Origin: Salisapilia sapeloensis CBS 127946 | Lineage: Eukaryota > Protista > Oomycota | Length of the DNA: 64,000 nucleotides | Assembly: GCA_023334545.1 (NCBI GenBank) | Contig: JAADVB010000004.1 | Location: forward strand, 112,802-176,801 | Reading direction: 5' to 3' | Program-made: the position numbers and the translations under genes | Notes under the pieces: model-generated | The model's input: the letters and a program-made list of their open reading frames with translations, nothing else | What the model was told of the DNA's origin: nothing | The model's database searches: none | Shown here: piece by piece, positions 50,331 through 60,553 of the stretch | Layout of the letters: every line of letters begins with the position of its first letter | Position numbering within the stretch: position 1 is the stretch's first letter

Positions 50331-50640
50331 GTGCCATCCGTAGCACTCGTCACTGCTCCACTATTACAAATAGACTTGCTTTTACAAAAAATAAAGAATG
50401 CAATCTAGACAAGACACATACAGATCATCGATATTGAATAGCTTGACAAGTGGTTGCTTCGTTGGGGAAGAGCTCATCCTTCCAAAGCTGGAATGGTCCA
50501 TGAAACCCCTCAAGATCCACTTCAATATATCTTTTGCATTATTGAAGGACACATTCATACAGACACCTAGTTTATTTTGTTCTAGAAATCGGACGACAGT
50601 ATAGAATACTTGTGAACGAAATAAATTCAAACGATTGTCA

Positions 50641-51261
50641 ATGGCGAAGGAAGAGAACGATCCGAATTGCGCAGAGCCAGCATGCTTTGACAAGGCGAGC
50701 TTCTTCAAGAGTGCAATGGGCAAGCCTGGGAGCTCGAAAAAGACTGCTGAACTGCCGAAAGATTGCCCAGTGGATCGTCAGGAGCTTGGTAACTCGACGT
50801 GGAAGCTGGTATTTATATTCATTTCAATTCTTCTCGTCTACCTTGTGCTAATTAGCTACCATACGATATCATAGTTGCATTCCATGGGCATATACTATCC
50901 TGAGAATCCATCCAAGGAGCACCAGGAGAAGACAAAAGTGTTTATCGAGGCCTTGGCGCTCATGTACCCTTGCTCCCACTGTGCCGCCGACTTCCAGGAC
51001 AGCATCCAACAGTCTCCACCAAGGTACGTACAGTCCGCCTAATCTGTCTGAACCAGTTTATGACCATGTTTTTGCAGGGTTGACTCGAAAACAAGCTTGT
51101 CCCAGTGGCTGTGTGAACAGCATAACATTGTGAACAAGAAGATTGGCAAGCCAGTATTCGACTGCTCGATGGAGAGTCTAGAGAAACGGTGGAGAAAGGG
51201 TCGTCCAGAGTGCTGGGGAAAGGACTCAGAGACGAGTGAAGAGTCGCTAGGTCAAGACTGA
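50641..51261 (+). CDS. ERV1: ERV1/ALR FAD-dependent sulfhydryl oxidase (mitochondrial IMS type), 3 exons
   Basis: Motifs: CPVDRQELGNSTW.LLH, redox YPCSHC, WLCEQHNIVNKKIGKPVFDC, RW. Two GT-AG introns keep the frame. Confidence 0.93.
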
Positions 51262-51312
51262 GGATCAATAGAAGAACTAAACGACTCTGCGGTTTGCATT
51301 CTGGTTAATCGA

Positions 51313-52146
51313 CTACAACTCTTCCTTTGCTTCATCCGTCGACGGAACAGAACCTTCACACACTAGCTTTCGAGTTAAATAAGAGCGACTTTAATCATAG
51401 TAAAGAAGTGGTACCTTGTAGCTGCTGCGTGCACAGACGGTCGATAGCAGGCGTAAAGTTATCGAAGAAGGCGTGGATGAGATCGTCTTCATATTCGCCG
51501 ACAAAGCCAAGGCACTATACTCCTCTTTATATAAAATATGTGTACGGATATTGAAGATGAATATACCGCTTCTTGAGTCAATTTGGAAACACTTTTGTCT
51601 GCAGAATCAAGGTGAGGGAGCGGGTGATTGCAGACGTTGTCCAACACTTCGAGAATTCGGTCCTGCATCTACTTGTTACGATTGTACCAGCAGAATACTC
51701 GCAAATTAGTTACCTCGCTTCGAGCGTATCTAACCTTCTTCTTCTCTTCACTGATTCGATAGACAATGTCTACTTCATGGTCGTCCTACAGCATACGAAT
51801 AAGAAATCCCATTGCTACAGTTGAGCCGATGCATTGTACCGGTGTTGCGTCCAATTGCTTTTCAATGTCAGAAATAATCGACCGGCATACTAGCAGCACA
51901 AATGCAAATTAAAAAGCAAGTAGATCAAAATGCATAGTAAGCTTACAGCAGCAAGATGCTGGCTGGGTTTCGCCAAAGCACATCAGGTCGGAGTGTCCAC
52001 GAGCTGCAAACTGTTTCCCATAATTCCACCTTCCTCATTTCATTAGCTTCAAAGTCTCCATCGAAATCTGTTCCCTTATAGTACTTATTCGTCCATGCAT
52101 GCGCTGTACACGCCAGCATCGCCATCAAGAGCGTCTTCATGATCAT
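51313..52146 (-). CDS. Canopy (CNPY/MSAP, DUF3456)-like saposin-fold ER-lumenal protein, about 170 aa, 7 exons
   Basis: Exons 52146-52085, 52029-51947, 51889-51840, 51785-51714, 51662-51567, 51514-51415 and 51362-51313, with six GT-AG introns of 51-57 nt, join in frame. The product has a signal peptide, SCCLCRSIISDIE, VRYARSEDRILEVLDNVC, CLGFVGEYEDDLIHAFF, RLCTQQLQVC and a C-terminal KEEL. Confidence 0.82.
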
Positions 52147-52398
52147 CCTACGATCCCAATTTGAAGATGCACTTGCTCATAAAATTAGACACAAATGCCC
52201 CTGTTCCTTATTATACATGCACAGTCCAGTCCGAAGCATCCGCGGTCGATGTTCTCGAATGCTATTTCGAAGCTGCAAGTAGCAATATCTTTCTATAGAT
52301 CTTGCCTGTATGCCCGTCGAATCGACTCCAGAGCGACCCTCACGAGTCGTCTCGTATTAATACACATATAGAACCATTTAACTTGAAGTAAGTATAGC

Positions 52399-52408
52399 GC
52401 CACGTGGC
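52399..52408. promoter_or_regulatory. Palindromic GCCACGTGGC (G-box/UPRE-like bZIP site) in the Canopy-GRP94 divergent spacer
   Basis: Perfect 10-bp palindrome containing CCACG/CACGTG. The function is inferred, not shown. Confidence 0.45.
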
Positions 52409-52450
52409 TTCTGCTGGTCATTTCGTGGTCCGATCCAACAGCCAAGTTGC

Positions 52451-52463
52451 CATTCCGCAATTT
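52451..52463 (+). promoter_or_regulatory. Oomycete INR+FPR core promoter (CATTCCGCAATTT) of GRP94
   Basis: Exact match to the Phytophthora core-promoter consensus CATTYYNCAWTTT, ending 24 nt upstream of the ATG at 52488. Confidence 0.7.
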
Positions 52464-52487
52464 GACTCGCCGTGAAGACTACGGAAG

Positions 52488-54870
52488 ATGGCGCGCTGGC
52501 GATCGATACTTGTACTTATTGCTGTGCTACTATGCACCATTAATACTGGCTCCTATGCCTCCGTGGAGACCGAGTCGGCGACGTTCGCGTAAGCACTTGC
52601 ATCGACGTTCCTTCATTAACTTCAACGCTAATGTTTCTGTGTCTAGACAAGAGCCGACACTGCCTTCGTTAGACGAATTGGAAAATGGAGAAAAGTTTGA
52701 GTTCCAAGCGGAAGTCTCAAGACTTATGGATATTATCATCAACTCGTTATACAAGAGCAAAGAAATTTTCCTACGGGAGATCATTTCAAATGCTGCCGAC
52801 GCGTTGGACAAGGTCCGATTCCTCTCACTCTCAGATGATTCCATGTTGGGAGACCATAAGGACCTGGAAATTCATGTGAGTTCTAACCCGGAAGAGGGCA
52901 CTTTGACAATTCGCGATACCGGTATTGGTATGACTAAAGACGAGCTTGTCACCAACTTGGGCACGGTCGCCAAATCCGGAACAGCCAACTTTGTTGAGAT
53001 GATGCAAAAAGGAAGTGGGGATGCAAGTCTCATTGGCCAGTTTGGCGTCGGATTCTACTCGGTCTATCTTGTCGCGGACCGAGTGCAAGTCGTGTCGAAG
53101 AATAACAACGACGAGCAATACGTATGGGAGTCTGATGCCAACGCGTCTTTCACGATCGCAAAGGACCCTCGAGGAAACACGCTTGGTCGAGGTACCGAGA
53201 TCACGCTGTTTTTGAAGAAGGATGCATCAACGTTTTCCAACGAACAAAAGCTGCGAGAGCTCATCACGCACTACTCTGAGTTCGTCACATTCCCCATCTA
53301 TCTCAAGACAACGTCTACTGAAACTTTCGAGGTCGAAGATGAGGCCGAAAGTGATGAAGAAACTGTCTCAGAAGATGAGGATAGTGATGAACTTGAAGCA
53401 AAAGACGAAGAGGTGAAGAAAACGCACACGGAGACTCGAACAGTTTCTTCATGGGAACTTGTGAACGATGTCAAGCCGATCTGGATGCGTTCAAAGGAGG
53501 ATCTATCCGACGAAGAGTACCAGAACTTTTACAAGTCGATCACGAAAGCGTCAACGGATCCTCTTACGTGGATCCACTTCAAGGCAGAAGGTGAAATCGA
53601 ATTCAAGTCGATTCTGTACATTCCGAGTGAAAGTCCTCCCAACTTTTACCAGGGCTTTGAAAACAAAGACGCAGACGTCAAGCTGTATGTTCGCAAGGTA
53701 CTCATCTCGGACGACTTTACTGACTTTTTGCCTCGGTACCTCAACTTTATCGCTGGCGTCGTGGACTCGGACGACCTTCCAATCAATGTTTCTCGCGAAA
53801 CGCTGCAAGAGAATAAAATCCTGCGTGTCATCAAGAAGAAACTCGTCCGCAAAGTCTTGGAGATGCTCCGCAAGTTATCTGAGAACAAGATTGACGACGA
53901 GGAAGAGAATGAAGACGACGAAAAGTCAGCATCACAGTCGCAAAACGAGGATTACATCACGTTCTGGGAAGCTTACGGCAAGAGCATTAAGTTGGGAGTC
54001 ATGGATGACCACAGCAACCGTGAAAAGTTGGTGAAACTCCTTCGCTTCAAGAGCAACAAGAGCGACGGCAAGTGGACGTCCTTGGCCGACTACGTGTCTC
54101 GCATGAAGGACTGGCAACAGTCTATCTACTACCTCACGTGCGAAAACCTCGACCAGTGTAAACGATCTCCCTTCCTCGAAAAGATCAAAGCAAAGGGACT
54201 CGAAGTCTTGTACCTCTCCGATCCTCTAGATGAGTTCACTGTCCCACACATCACCGAATTTGACAGCAAGAAGCTCGTGTCCATTTCGAAGCAAGATGTC
54301 AAGTTCGAAGACGAGGACGAAAGTGTGATGAAGAAGCGCGACGAGCTGTATGAAGAGCATTACGAAACACTTACGAAAGGACTCTCGAAGCTCTACGGCA
54401 AAAAGGTGAGCAAAGTGGAGATGTCTCAACGTGTCGTGGACTCGCCTGCAGTCATGGTCGCGTCGCAATGGGGATACACTGCGAACATGCAGCGGATCAT
54501 GAAGGCGCAGACTTTTGCCACCGGAGACGAATCGTATAATCAGATGGATGCCTTGGGTGGTCCGATCATGGAGCTCAACCCCCGCCATCCGATCATTGTG
54601 AAGCTGAATGAGAAGATGATGAGTGATCCGAAAGAAGATGAGACGAAGGACCTCGCATGGCTCTTGTATGATGCTGCTCTGATCAACTCTGGCTACGATA
54701 TGGATGACAAGGACCACTTTGCCAGTCGCTTGTACCGAGTGATGAAGGGCAGCATGGGCATTGATAGTCTGGAGCTCGAACCAGAGATTGAAGTGCCGGA
54801 GGACGAAGAAGACGAGGAAGAAGACGCCGTTGAAGTGGAGGATCTGGATATGGAGCGAGATGAATTGTAG
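52488..54870 (+). CDS. HSP90B1: Endoplasmin / GRP94 (ER HSP90), 2 exons
   Basis: Signal-peptide exon 52488-52588 ([17 protein letters not shown]) joins via intron 52589-52646. Motifs: [56 protein letters not shown]-terminal RDEL. Confidence 0.98.
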
Positions 54871-55189
54871 TGAGCCAACAGAGGAAGATAAAAGCGAGAC
54901 TTTGCTTCTATCCGGCATCCGCCTGTACTCGAATACAGCTCCATGGAAAGCTTGTATTCGTATTCATCCTTAAATCTCTTTCGAATAACACCATGCTTAA
55001 GCTATCAGTACCATACCTTATCAACTTTCCATCGTCCTTAACCTGTCCACATAATATCTCCTTCTATAATGCGAGTACTTCCGTTAAAACTCATCTACAT
55101 GAGCTAGCTAGTTGTACAATTTCATGCTATATCCTACTTTATGTCCATTGGAAGACTGCGAACACTCTTCTTGAATGCAAACATGACTT

Positions 55190-57937
55190 TTATTGATTCA
55201 AACTGAAGCCACCACCGACGAATCGATTCGAGGCTGCAACCGCAAGTTGCCTTTGCGCTTCCGCAGGTGTCGGTCGAGTAGACCCGTTTGAACCGACCGG
55301 TCTTGTAGGTGTCCCACTCGCTAACGTCGGCAGTTTATCATTCGAGTAATTGTTATTTGACGCAGGACTCCTGCCACCGTGTACTACTCTCTTCACAACT
55401 ACGACGCCTCTCTCTTTCATCTTGTCATCTAGTTTCTTCTTATAATATTTTCGCTTGAACTCATGCAGTTCTCGCCCAACTCTCTCCAGCTCAAACTTGA
55501 GTTCTCCTTCCTTGGCTTGGCTCATATTCTGCTCGCTCAGCAAACTCTTTAGCTGCTTATCTTTATCTCTTACGACTTGCTGGTACCAACACAATTGCTC
55601 AGCAACTTCTGGCCCAGGCTGTCTCGCCAATATTGTCTTCAGTTCCTCTTGTAACTTGTCTTTTTCCTGAATTATCAGTTCCTTCTCGACCACCTCCTCC
55701 GTTTTCTGAATTAAACGCTTTTGCAGCGTTTGGATCTTTTGCAGCAATTCATACGTCGCAGGATCACTTCCCTCTAGCTTTCGCCATCGATGAACATTCA
55801 TCGGGTTCTCCAACTCCTCCGATAATGCTTTGACTTTCGTTTTCTCCTGTAGTAACTCTCTTTGAAGCTGATATACTTCTCGCTTAAGTTCACTCGACAC
55901 GCCCACTTGGTGCTTTGCAACACCAAGCTCTCTCTTGAGATCAGCAATCTTCAGCTTCAGGACTCGAATGTCCTGAAGTCGTTCATGGTACTGTGCTTCT
56001 CCTCTCGCGAGTGTGCTTTGCTGAATCTTTAGCTTCTCATAAAGCAACGCCAGCTCATCGTTACGACGGATAAGCTGTGTACCCAGAATGTCTCGTTCAT
56101 TAATAACTTGATCGTACTCTTTCCTCTGCTCCAATGCTTCGCTATCCAAACGCCTTAGCATCGTCGACAGCTTCCGGATCTCTGTGTCTTGATGAGATAC
56201 TGTTTCCTCTGTAGTCGACAGTAACGACTTTAGCCTAGCAAGCTCGTTCTTGTGCAGCTCTCTCTGTTTCTCTACATGTTGCAGCTCAAAGTGCTCTTTC
56301 ACTAGTGCTGCGTCTTTAGCAGCCACCTCTTCCTTCAACTGCTCTAGCTGATGCGTCAAGATTTTGAACTTGCGCTTGAGCTCTGCTATCTCATCTTGGC
56401 TTTCAATCAAGTTCTTGCTATACAAGTTCCTTTCACTACGGACGGTCTCGTACAACTGCTGCTGTTGCTTCAGTCGCGTCTCTCCTTCACCAACCTTCTT
56501 CTGTAGTTCTTCATTCCGCATCCCACTCAGTTTTAGATTTTCCTCAGCATCTAGATACAGTCGTCTTTGTTCCGCAGCCTCTTGCCCACTCTTTTCTCGG
56601 TCCTTTTCGAGCTGGTAAATAAGCTTTCGTTGCTTCATTGCTTCCTTCTGGAAACCTGCGAGTTCCTGCTCTAGGTTCTTCACTACCCGTTCATTCGTTT
56701 TGACATCATCAATAGCTCGCTTCGCCTTCCCTTCTGCCTGTTCAGTCTGCCTGAGCTGCATTTCCTTCTCTCGAACCAGAGCATCTCGTTCCGTTTTTGC
56801 CAAATCTTCTGCTCGTTTATCATTATCTAAATCCTTTTGCATGCTCTTGATCTGCGTCTGAAGCACTCCTTTCGAAGTCCGTTCATTTTGAAGCTTATCT
56901 TCCAGCTTGAGGACGTTCCGTTTTTCCTTATCAATCTTCCTTTCAGCCAAATCTTTCTCGACTTTCAAACGATTTATCTCATCCTGTTTGCTCTTGAGCT
57001 CAGACTCGAGGTTACGTCGCTCGACTTCGAGTTGCAACGTCTTGTCACTTTGCTCGTTCATCATGTCCGTCAACTTTTGCGACCGAGAGTACAAAGCTTC
57101 ATAGTCTCGTGCGTACTTGTCCATTGTCGCCCTTGTCTCGTTCACTTGCTTTTCCAAGTTACCAACCTGAGTTTGAGCTTTGATCAAGTCCGATGAGCAT
57201 GCTGTGTGTTCATCCGTCTTCTTCTCCAACTTAGACTTTGTGTCCTTGAGCTCCTTTTCCATCCGGTCTCTTCGTCGATTCTCCCTCTCCTGTTCAGCGG
57301 CCTTGAGCGTCAACTGGTCCTTCAGCTGTTGCATCTCAATCTTCTGCTTCGCTCCTACTGACTCTCCATCAGCCAGACGTTGGTGGAGATCGTGAATTCT
57401 CTCCTGGTCTCTCTTAGCGTTAGACTCATGCTCTTCATTCGCTCTTGCCAAATCTTCTTTCGCTCTCAAGACTTCCCGTAGCATGTTTTCCTGTCCGGCC
57501 GACACGCCAGCGCCTTGCTCGACCAACTTGCCTAGATTTAAAACTTCGTCCTTAAGTTGCTGAATCGTATCCTTGGCTCTCATCTCCTTCTCATGAGATG
57601 CATCGACCATCTTCCACGCTTTCTCCAGTTCCTTCTTCAGCGAAGCCAAGGAAGCCTGGTCTTCCTGCGACAGTTTCAATGCTGTCTGCACCTTGGCTGC
57701 ATTCGTCAGAATCTCTCCATTCAACTCTCGACATTTCTTCAGTAACTTCTTTTCCTGTCCATGTGATTTGGTCAGCGCTCGATGCAGCTTTTCATACTCG
57801 ATCCGGAACTTTTCCAAGCTCTTATCACCAGCTAATTCAACCAAAACTTCTTGAAAGTCATGTTCAATATCTTCTAATGATGTCGAAGGCTCCAACTCGT
57901 CTATACTCTTCTCGGATGGTTTACTCGAGCCTTCCAT
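55190..57937 (-). CDS. CFAP58: Cilia- and flagella-associated protein 58 (coiled coil)
   Basis: ATG at 57937. Motifs: ERDILGTQLIRRNDELALLYEKLKIQQS, ELENPMNVHRWRKLEGSDP and C-terminal FVGGGFSL. Intronless. Confidence 0.92.
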   Translation of the reverse strand: MEGSSKPSEKSIDELEPSTSLEDIEHDFQEVLVELAGDKSLEKFRIEYEKLHRALTKSHGQEKKLLKKCRELNGEILTNAAKVQTALKLSQEDQASLASLKKELEKAWKMVDASHEKEMRAKDTIQQLKDEVLNLGKLVEQGAGVSAGQENMLREVLRAKEDLARANEEHESNAKRDQERIHDLHQRLADGESVGAKQKIEMQQLKDQLTLKAAEQERENRRRDRMEKELKDTKSKLEKKTDEHTACSSDLIKAQTQVGNLEKQVNETRATMDKYARDYEALYSRSQKLTDMMNEQSDKTLQLEVERRNLESELKSKQDEINRLKVEKDLAERKIDKEKRNVLKLEDKLQNERTSKGVLQTQIKSMQKDLDNDKRAEDLAKTERDALVREKEMQLRQTEQAEGKAKRAIDDVKTNERVVKNLEQELAGFQKEAMKQRKLIYQLEKDREKSGQEAAEQRRLYLDAEENLKLSGMRNEELQKKVGEGETRLKQQQQLYETVRSERNLYSKNLIESQDEIAELKRKFKILTHQLEQLKEEVAAKDAALVKEHFELQHVEKQRELHKNELARLKSLLSTTEETVSHQDTEIRKLSTMLRRLDSEALEQRKEYDQVINERDILGTQLIRRNDELALLYEKLKIQQSTLARGEAQYHERLQDIRVLKLKIADLKRELGVAKHQVGVSSELKREVYQLQRELLQEKTKVKALSEELENPMNVHRWRKLEGSDPATYELLQKIQTLQKRLIQKTEEVVEKELIIQEKDKLQEELKTILARQPGPEVAEQLCWYQQVVRDKDKQLKSLLSEQNMSQAKEGELKFELERVGRELHEFKRKYYKKKLDDKMKERGVVVVKRVVHGGRSPASNNNYSNDKLPTLASGTPTRPVGSNGSTRPTPAEAQRQLAVAASNRFVGGGFSLNQ

Positions 57938-59523: not shown

Positions 59524-60553
59524 ATGATGGCCGACTCAGAGACACCACCCACGGATTCGGTATGTTGCCTTCCTTTTTCATACTCTAGATATCAAAGTAG
59601 AGATGAAACTGAATACGTGATGACTATAGCATGAACAGCCTTGGGAAAATGAAAAAGGGATTAAGCGTATGGCAGATTTATTACGTGGACGAAAAGGTAT
59701 GCCAGTGCGCAACGCTGTGGAACTCGGTAAGCGCGTCGAGTTTTTCCGTGGCGACAAACTCGGATCCTTCCTCCTCGCATCTCCAGTCGCGAAAAAGCAT
59801 TTTCCATCTCTCCAGACCAAGGAAGATTGTCGATCCGTCGGCCGGTCGCTCGTTCGCTTCGGCTACATCCACCGGTCGGAGCGTGACGCGAAGAACAAAA
59901 AGGTGTTGACGCCTACGAAGAACCACGAGTTTGTGCATGAAGGCTACTACACGTGGATGTACGACGGTCCGAAGACGCTACGCAATATTTTAACAGCTCT
60001 GCTTATCATCGGCTTCCTCATCATCACGTGCTTCCCCATTTGGCCGCAATGGGCCAAGGTCGCATTGTGGTACATGAGCGTCACGTTTCTGCTCTTCGTC
60101 GCCATTTTCAGTCTCGTTCGTATCATCGTCTTCCTCCTGCTTTGGATCGGTGGCTTTGAGTTCTGGATCTTCCCCAATATCTTTGACGACAACCTGAGTG
60201 TCGCGGATTCCTTCGTACCGGTCTACTCGCTGGCAGGAACGAGTCCGAGCGAGCAAAAGTATAGAATCATCGTCGCATGTGCCTTTGTCGCGTTCTGCTA
60301 CTGGATCGGACAGCAGCCAACGGACTTTGACGAGTACATGTCGTTGACGAAGCAGTTTACGGACGATATTTACAGCGGCAAGCTGCTGAGCGATATGTCC
60401 CAGCAAGATCAGGACAACATTGATAAACCCAAAGTACCGGATTTAGAGGATCTGCTCAAGGAAGATCATGAAGTCGAGCATGAAGAAGACGATGAAGACG
60501 CCAGGTTTGAGAAACTCCTCGAAGATGAAGAGGACGAAAAGGAAGAATTGTAG
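59524..60553 (+). CDS. SEC62: Translocation protein SEC62, 2 exons
   Basis: Motifs: RVEFFRGDKL, F...GYYTWMYDGP, CFPIWPQWAKVALWY.SVTFL, FWIFPNIFDD, acidic tail. The first exon (from 59524) joins in frame via a gtatgt..tatag intron. Confidence 0.92.

Follow-up and report, generated by a model that had tools for sequence, protein, structure and literature searches.

To our knowledge, GRP94 is unusual among Hsp90 chaperones in having very few known helpers, all from vertebrate immune cells, and the mammalian genes for the two Canopy proteins CNPY3/PRAT4A and MZB1/pERp1 are not adjacent to HSP90B1. Both proteins carry the PF11938 (DUF3456) domain, reside in the endoplasmic reticulum (ER), share a saposin-like fold with a hairpin insertion and act as GRP94 co-chaperones (PMC4052763, PMC12651230). 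In the 64,000-nucleotide stretch of contig JAADVB010000004.1 of Salisapilia sapeloensis CBS 127946 analyzed here (hereafter, the window), a Canopy gene lies head to head with the gene for GRP94, the known partner of CNPY3 and MZB1 thus being the genomic neighbor of their oomycete relative. The pair is retained as a unit in all oomycetes examined.

A comparable arrangement is that of human HSPD1/HSPE1 (Hsp60/Hsp10), which are placed head to head around one bidirectional promoter; in that case, experiments have established the partnership as well as the promoter. As in that pair, a chaperone and its helper would diverge from a short shared promoter responsive to stress, properties that Canopy and GRP94 may have in common with it; the protein families and the cellular compartment are different. 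In sequence, the closest described proteins are oomycete orthologs named "Saposin B-type domain-containing protein," such as Poli38472_002055 of Pythium oligandrum, PInf_000623 of Phytophthora infestans and SDRG_15936 of Saprolegnia diclina. They occupy the same head-to-head position beside GRP94 and share with the window protein a length of 166–174 amino acids, a signal peptide, eight cysteines, a [DE][DE]L end, the W..K.F..GH..C...CC.C start, a RISEEKK..Y/F-S-R-S-E block and an FVGEYEDE helix. The window gene differs in its six short introns, compared with fewer in these orthologs, and in sequence, the identity being 42–75% (tblastn exon alignments).

Structure and Expression of the Canopy Gene

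The gene encodes an expressed 170-amino-acid ortholog of the oomycete DUF3456/Canopy proteins. Its coding sequence (CDS) runs on the minus strand from 52146 to 51313 and comprises seven exons with a total of 513 nt, that is, 170 codons followed by TAG, with no internal stop (local frame check). Transcript evidence was provided by contigs of three public runs (X1, X2, and X3) placed on 50400..55200; these contigs are spliced and therefore derive from RNA. All six GT..AG introns of 51–57 nt on this strand are backed by transcript joints, and five of them, all except intron 1, are each supported by two or three runs. The preliminary description of this locus, made from the nucleotide sequence alone, had proposed a hidden minus-strand gene of seven exons and 170 residues, and the transcript joints and the open frame reproduce both numbers exactly. 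Single open reading frames (ORFs) within 51313..52146 of the minus strand do not exceed 67 codons, and the conserved pieces are spread over three frames; since no exon exceeds 34 codons, the gene appears in ORF lists as fragments only.

The spliced model could in principle be an artefact, or the remains of a decaying pseudogene, and the unusual AAG acceptor of intron 1, whose joint is present in a single run with a side of 28 nt, as well as the failure of Pfam's own PF11938 model to reach its cut-off on single exons, could be read in this way. However, the other five introns are each seen in two or three runs, the frame is open across 513 nt and every exon matches the orthologs in order. The placement of intron 1 itself agrees with the ortholog N-termini, in which the signal peptide, A-W-T-x-R/K and W-D/N-x-x-K-x-F continue across the same point, so that the residues flanking the intron align with the ortholog N-terminus. 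The artefact or pseudogene reading is thus largely refuted, and we consider it very improbable.

The acceptors of the five remaining introns are TAG or CAG. The 513-nt CDS with its six introns may be compared with the almost intronless ortholog in locus L005; by oomycete standards, introns seem to be numerous in this lineage, whose assembly is small (22.4 Mb).

Canopy Family Assignment and Predicted Fold

The N-terminus of the protein is a hydrophobic leader with AHA as its last residues before W (by inspection); the protein carries YARSE at residue 85 and ends in KEEL, the three features previously noted for it all being present in the spliced frame. Of its nine cysteines, one belongs to the signal peptide, and the mature part has the other eight (38, 47, 48, 50, 100, 122, 149, and 156). 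Cys 47 and 50 (CxxC), 100, 122, 149, and 156 fall on columns that are (nearly) invariant in the wider family, while Cys 38 and 48 represent additional positions common to oomycete and labyrinthulid sequences. The six-cysteine saposin-like pattern described earlier therefore undercounts the mature cysteines. The two extra cysteines distinguish the window and oomycete proteins from CNPY3 and MZB1, as does the lack of a sequence-level match in the PDB, where a search with the family profile returned weak saposin C matches only and no Canopy or MZB1 entry.

Against PF11938 (gathering score 21.1 bits), exon 6 alone among the single window exons gave a score, 14.6 bits (E 0.043, profile positions 114–146), and the other exons taken singly gave none; when all six frames of the genome were searched with this profile, nothing was found because the exons are too short. 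Exon 5, in a trial version 6 nt longer, gave a SapB_1 hint (E 0.048). The orthologs pass PF11938 with 43–61 bits, and ten relatives scanned scored 27–61 bits, all above 21.1. Profile and word searches together yielded 26 named oomycete proteins of 135–246 amino acids with this domain, while a homology search starting from the L005 ORF returned three proteins only. An alignment of 17 oomycete orthologs was used to build profile A2, which five window exons match colinearly over positions 22–156 (exon-wise hmmsearch, about 139 bits summed; single scores in Table 1). The Canopy locus at 51313..52146 is the sole match of A2 in the genome. The wider Canopy family is found widely in eukaryotes, extending to Goniomonas and a rhizarian.

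For the Globisporangium ortholog P0124, the model computed with AlphaFold predicts a saposin-like fold with a hairpin insertion (predicted local distance difference test, pLDDT, 76; predicted template modeling score, pTM, 0.72). In VIA-align comparisons this model matched saposin D with Z 8.3 over 79/79 residues (root-mean-square deviation 2.4) and human pERp1/MZB1 (7aah) over 116 residues with Z 7.7, and the first unrelated fold after these had a Z of about 4; in Foldseek, all E-values of the same model were above 0.1. Saposins A–D and granulysin, which have the fold of saposin-like proteins (SAPLIP), were its best structural matches, saposin D first; compared with saposins, Canopy proteins have an N-terminal extension, a beta-hairpin insertion and ER retention. 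The presence of a signal peptide, a disulfide-stabilized saposin-like domain and the KDEL-type KEEL end indicates that the protein is most likely a soluble resident of the ER lumen, and the ortholog C-termini are REEL, KDEL, HEDL, KDDL, and similar. The earlier designation as a saposin-like ER protein of the Canopy/DUF3456 family is consequently supported by orthology, by the exon-wise profile match and by the ortholog fold model. The protein is a further member of a known family, whose orthologs have already been labeled automatically in many oomycete genomes.

Three of the orthologs, P0221, P0222, and P0126 (Phytophthora cinnamomi, Plasmopara halstedii, and Globisporangium splendens, respectively), carry the public name "RxLR-like protein," which looks like a misannotation in view of their KDEL-type end and PF11938 domain. 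In P0128, a protein of 560 amino acids from a Joint Genome Institute (JGI) metagenome, DUF3456 at 49–106 is followed by EF-hands at 490–546, an arrangement due either to a fusion or to the merging of two gene calls.

Conservation of the Canopy–GRP94 Pair

The neighbor of the Canopy gene encodes a true GRP94/endoplasmin, as evidenced by its Hsp90 architecture, signal peptide, RDEL end and placement in the tree. The proteins most similar to it are from oomycetes, with identities of up to about 70%, and NCBI names several of them Endoplasmin. In the phylogenetic tree it forms a long branch within an oomycete clade that has full support, its order relative to the Phytophthora and Pythium groups not being resolved there; the DNA thus comes from an oomycete that is itself divergent. 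Both the identity of this gene and its start codon at 52488 agree with the preliminary description, to which a 58-nt intron splitting GRP94 itself has to be added.

The divergent Canopy–GRP94 pair is present in 8/8 oomycete loci examined, Peronosporales, Pythiales, and Saprolegniales among them. Besides the window, these are the loci of Pythium oligandrum, Phytophthora nicotianae, Saprolegnia parasitica, and Aphanomyces invadans, where the annotated neighbors of GRP94 bear PF11938, and three contigs assigned to oomycetes by the GRP94 tree. Consecutive locus tags give the same pairing in five further annotated genomes, among them those of Phytophthora infestans and P. kernoviae, Pythium insidiosum, and Peronosclerospora sorghi. 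The synteny across oomycetes that the preliminary description called for was thus observed at every oomycete locus examined.

In Peronosporales and Pythiales the pair is part of a wider block colinear with the window: WD40, TPR, Erv1, Canopy, GRP94, CFAP58, DLH, and Sec62. Such colinearity of the flanking genes Erv1, TPR, WD40, CFAP58, DLH, and Sec62 among the window, Pythium and Phytophthora would also be expected from neutral microsynteny, in which breaks within a two-promoter spacer of 136–549 bp are harmful while the products and their regulation are functionally unlinked; the WD40 gene, which remains nearby in Saprolegniales, is consistent with this as well. In the latter order, however, only WD40, Canopy, and GRP94 of the wider block are still together, and the pair stays although the downstream flanks are wholly different in Saprolegnia and Aphanomyces. 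At the Globisporangium-like locus L004:6635-10388, the Canopy–GRP94 block alone is inverted, with both breakpoints outside the pair and with the order and strands of Sec62, CFAP58, Erv1, TPR, and WD40 kept; this inversion needs confirmation, misassembly being possible because the locus lies on a single short-read contig. Two palindromic motifs, moreover, are retained in otherwise unalignable spacers (see below). With these observations taken into account, a purely neutral origin of the conservation appears improbable.

Outside the oomycetes, searches with two profiles revealed no Canopy–GRP94 adjacency at three GRP94 loci (L007, L021, and L022) that group with ochrophytes and Incisomonas, and GRP94 was not found beside two non-oomycete Canopy genes, one marine (L025) and one encoding the Hondaea fusion protein described below (L027). 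In other stramenopiles, where the preliminary description proposed to test for the pairing, it was accordingly not seen at the three ochrophyte-like loci or beside the Hondaea gene; as to the proposed ancient partnership outside animals, the Canopy family does occur widely in eukaryotes, and the adjacency was seen only in oomycetes among the loci examined. Among the papers listed by literature searches, none was found on a conserved Canopy–GRP94 pairing, its spacer motifs or its joint inversion, and none that joins DUF3456/CNPY with an oomycete or the Phytophthora unfolded-protein response (UPR) with GRP94.

The Spacer and Candidate Promoter Elements

The Canopy start codon at 52146 and that of GRP94 at 52488 diverge across exactly the 341 bp reported for them before. 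No transcript contig of X1–X3 lies over 52171..52331, and the GRP94 transcript contigs begin at 52442–52471, the likely start sites of both genes being about 280 bp apart. The two genes are on opposite strands, with start sites less than 1 kb apart and nothing between, as is characteristic of divergent pairs.

The orthologous spacers measure 136–549 bp, and the eight sequences do not align. All of them (8/8; shuffle mean 1.25/8) contain TTCnnGAA, which resembles a heat-shock element (HSE), and the exact TTCTAGAA is found in five of the eight. The palindrome CCACGTGG also occurs in 5/8 spacers (shuffle mean 0.05), and just twice in the 64-kb window. TTCTAGAA is a target of the P. infestans heat-shock factor (HSF) PITG_04701, verified by electrophoretic mobility shift assay (EMSA), and palindromes with an ACGT core are bound by a clade of basic leucine zipper (bZIP) proteins of the same species (PMC11267843). 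Putative core promoters of the class that combines an initiator (INR) with a flanking promoter region (FPR) (PMC3599244) can be recognized before both genes (Table 1). The sole exact TTCTAGAA of the window is located at 50580, about 40 bp upstream of the first Erv1 transcript contig.

The core CCACGT/ACGTGG is located 86–122 bp upstream of the start codons of BiP (L014), GRP170 (L018), and calreticulin (L010) in the same genome, with GRP94 at -88, and is not found in this interval before four non-ER genes of the Hsp70 family, also of this genome; the nominal p of 3e-6 refers to an interval picked post hoc and to a small sample. This core is a candidate ER-stress element of the organism. The longer palindrome GCCACGTGGC was considered as a marker of ER genes and rejected, its other nine sites being in coding sequence or beside genes for PP2C, a phosphodiesterase-family protein, HDAC, CPSase, and a kinase.

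Possible Functional Link between Canopy and GRP94

The arrangement suggests the following mechanism. The 341-bp spacer would act as one bidirectional stress-responsive promoter recognized by HSF and by an ACGT-core bZIP or basic helix-loop-helix (bHLH) factor, and the HSE-like TTCnnGAA and CCACGTGG, being palindromes free of orientation, would serve both directions. The ER would thereby be supplied with GRP94 and Canopy together, and Canopy may bind GRP94 and aid the loading or maturation of secretory clients, as do the mammalian co-chaperones CNPY3 and MZB1 (PMC12651230, PMC4052763). Co-regulation of the two genes from the shared spacer is plausible, and binding of Canopy to GRP94 is suggested by analogy with the mammalian proteins. 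Taken as a whole, this explanation, comprising an ER Canopy protein, a shared stress promoter and a co-chaperone role for GRP94, is the one we favor, with somewhat more confidence for it than against it.

Alternatively, the two genes may share only an ER-stress or heat-shock regulon and its promoter, Canopy acting alone as a saposin-like folding helper or a CNPY2-like modulator of the UPR and not via GRP94. The conserved spacer motifs and the similar ACGT cores before BiP, GRP170, and calreticulin would be accounted for equally by this alternative, and several roles have been reported for animal Canopy proteins. It also accords with a complex prediction for the Pythium oligandrum pair (GRP94 residues 26–790 and Canopy residues 20–167, own alignments unused), which gave scores of 0.10 and 0.07 against a mark of 0.34, no binding signal being detected in a result that decides neither way. 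Yet, among the many co-regulated ER genes, only Canopy stays physically joined to GRP94 across the oomycetes, the two genes invert as a unit in L004, and two animal members of the family are GRP94 co-chaperones (PMC4052763, PMC12651230). Regulation without a GRP94 partnership is therefore regarded as a serious but unlikely alternative.

Several points weigh against the combined promoter and co-chaperone explanation. Among the loci examined the adjacency was seen only in oomycetes, and part of its conservation may be ordinary microsynteny, because the WD40 gene is also retained beside the pair in Saprolegniales. In 2000 shuffles of the spacers none reached the observed counts of TTCnnGAA, TTCTAGAA or CCACGTGG, a test that overstates independence because the eight spacers are related by descent and that shows conservation, not independent recurrence. 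CCACGTGG may serve GRP94 alone, since it is near the start site of that gene, whereas about 230 bp separate it from that of Canopy, and the GCCACGTGGC decamer is not enriched genome-wide (10 sites vs. 9 for the control). The contig depths of GRP94 (596/269/196) and of the merged Erv1 and Canopy transcript (206/93/86) cannot rank the genes and were not taken as evidence of expression.

Labyrinthulomycete Fusion Proteins

A different association of the Canopy domain was observed in labyrinthulomycete proteins of 610–740 amino acids, in which an N-terminal FKBP_C domain and TPR repeats are joined, through a single hydrophobic segment predicted to span the membrane, to Canopy/DUF3456 at the C-terminus. 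The set includes P0216 of Hondaea fermentalgiana (L027:6001-8121), P0256 (a Mucochytrium quahogii transcript), P0152, P0207, P0149, P0203, and P0210; the Hondaea fusion is encoded by a single uninterrupted ORF. The Canopy domain has the oomycete-type start ..C...SCC.C, and one protein ends in KEL. TPR repeats of immunophilins of this FKBP type dock cytosolic Hsp90. The fusion may thus represent a Rosetta-stone link of Canopy to the Hsp90 machinery across the ER membrane, and may be a more unusual observation than the Canopy–GRP94 pair. A broader scenario would make Canopy an ancestral, general co-chaperone of GRP94, fixed in oomycetes as a two-gene unit driven by one palindromic promoter with HSE and G-box elements and independently fused, through a membrane anchor, to an FKBP-TPR immunophilin in labyrinthulomycetes, a second stramenopile lineage; we put it forward tentatively and consider it rather doubtful.

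Neighboring Genes and Feature Coordinates

Downstream of Canopy, a convergent gene codes for the sulfhydryl oxidase Erv1/ALR. A distance of 51 bp separates the Erv1 and Canopy stops, and the 3′ ends of the two genes overlap, as shown by one transcript contig that extends across both. On the other side, Sec62 is present beyond GRP94 as previously indicated, at about 4.8 kb after the stop at 54870 instead of the 4.7 kb given at that time.

Table 1. Coordinates of the Canopy–GRP94 unit, its candidate promoter elements and adjacent genes in the window.
Feature	Position	Strand	Evidence and remarks
Erv1/ALR sulfhydryl oxidase gene	50641..51261	+	Convergent with Canopy; same neighbor in L001, L002, L023
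Canopy gene, CDS span	51313..52146	-	Transcript joints; open 513-nt frame; exon-wise colinear match to oomycete Canopy profile
Canopy exon 1, start codon and signal peptide (..AHA/WTN)	52085..52146	-	X1 joint; aligns with SP-AW-T-x-R/K of orthologs
Canopy intron 1	52084..52030	-	55 nt; joint 52029/52085 in X1 only, 28-nt side; acceptor AAG, unusual
Canopy exon 2, W..K.F..GH..C and CC.C start of saposin-like domain	51947..52029	-	30.5 bits vs. A2, positions 22–52; tblastn to L001–L004
Canopy intron 2	51946..51890	-	57 nt; transcript joint
Canopy exon 3, first helix following CxxC	51840..51889	-	Transcript joints; 12.7 bits vs. A2
Canopy intron 3	51839..51786	-	54 nt; transcript joint
Canopy exon 4, beta-hairpin region ending in YARSE	51714..51785	-	37.7 bits vs. 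A2; 58–75% identity to orthologs (tblastn)
Canopy intron 4	51713..51663	-	51 nt; transcript joint
Canopy exon 5, starts DRILEV.., contains conserved Cys 100	51567..51662	-	Joint sets acceptor at 51663, not 51669; 15.5 bits vs. A2
Canopy intron 5	51566..51515	-	52 nt; transcript joint
Canopy exon 6, C..FVGEYED helix, Cys 122 and Cys 149	51415..51514	-	42.7 bits vs. A2; PF11938 E 0.043
Canopy intron 6	51414..51363	-	52 nt; transcript joint
Canopy exon 7, last Cys, KEEL, TAG stop	51313..51362	-	Transcript joints; open frame
Spacer between start codons (putative shared promoter region)	52147..52487	.	341 bp
INR+FPR-like block before Canopy	52155..52169	-	9–23 nt upstream of Canopy ATG; by inspection only
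HSE-like TTCTCGAA (TTCnnGAA)	52252..52259	.	Second TTCGAA at 52266
Palindrome GCCACGTGGC (G-box/CCACG core)	52399..52408	.	88 bp upstream of GRP94 ATG
INR+FPR-like core promoter of GRP94	52450..52464	+	GRP94 transcript contigs begin at 52442–52471; similar blocks in L001–L005
GRP94 exon 1, signal peptide	52488..52588	+	Joint 52588/52647 in three runs
GRP94 intron	52589..52646	+	58 nt; joint in all three runs
GRP94 exon 2, Hsp90 ATPase, middle and C-terminal domains, ..RDEL	52647..54870	+	HATPase_c plus HSP90; Pfam HSP90 E 5.5e-188; oomycete endoplasmin clade
Sec62 ORF	59669..60553	+	Same position in L001, L002, L023

Implications

With respect to annotation, the Canopy gene is of a kind that escapes ORF-based tracks in intron-rich genomes, and its orthologs are misnamed as RxLR-like in some records. 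The pairing, with its conserved palindromes and one joint inversion, provides independent genome-context evidence from outside animals for a joint function of Canopy and GRP94. Since both genes are single-copy in this genome, the pair offers a simple test system, and Phytophthora and Saprolegnia are transformable. Oomycetes secrete effectors and wall proteins in large amounts and depend on doing so; a helper of GRP94 could thus, speculatively, be of importance to their biology.

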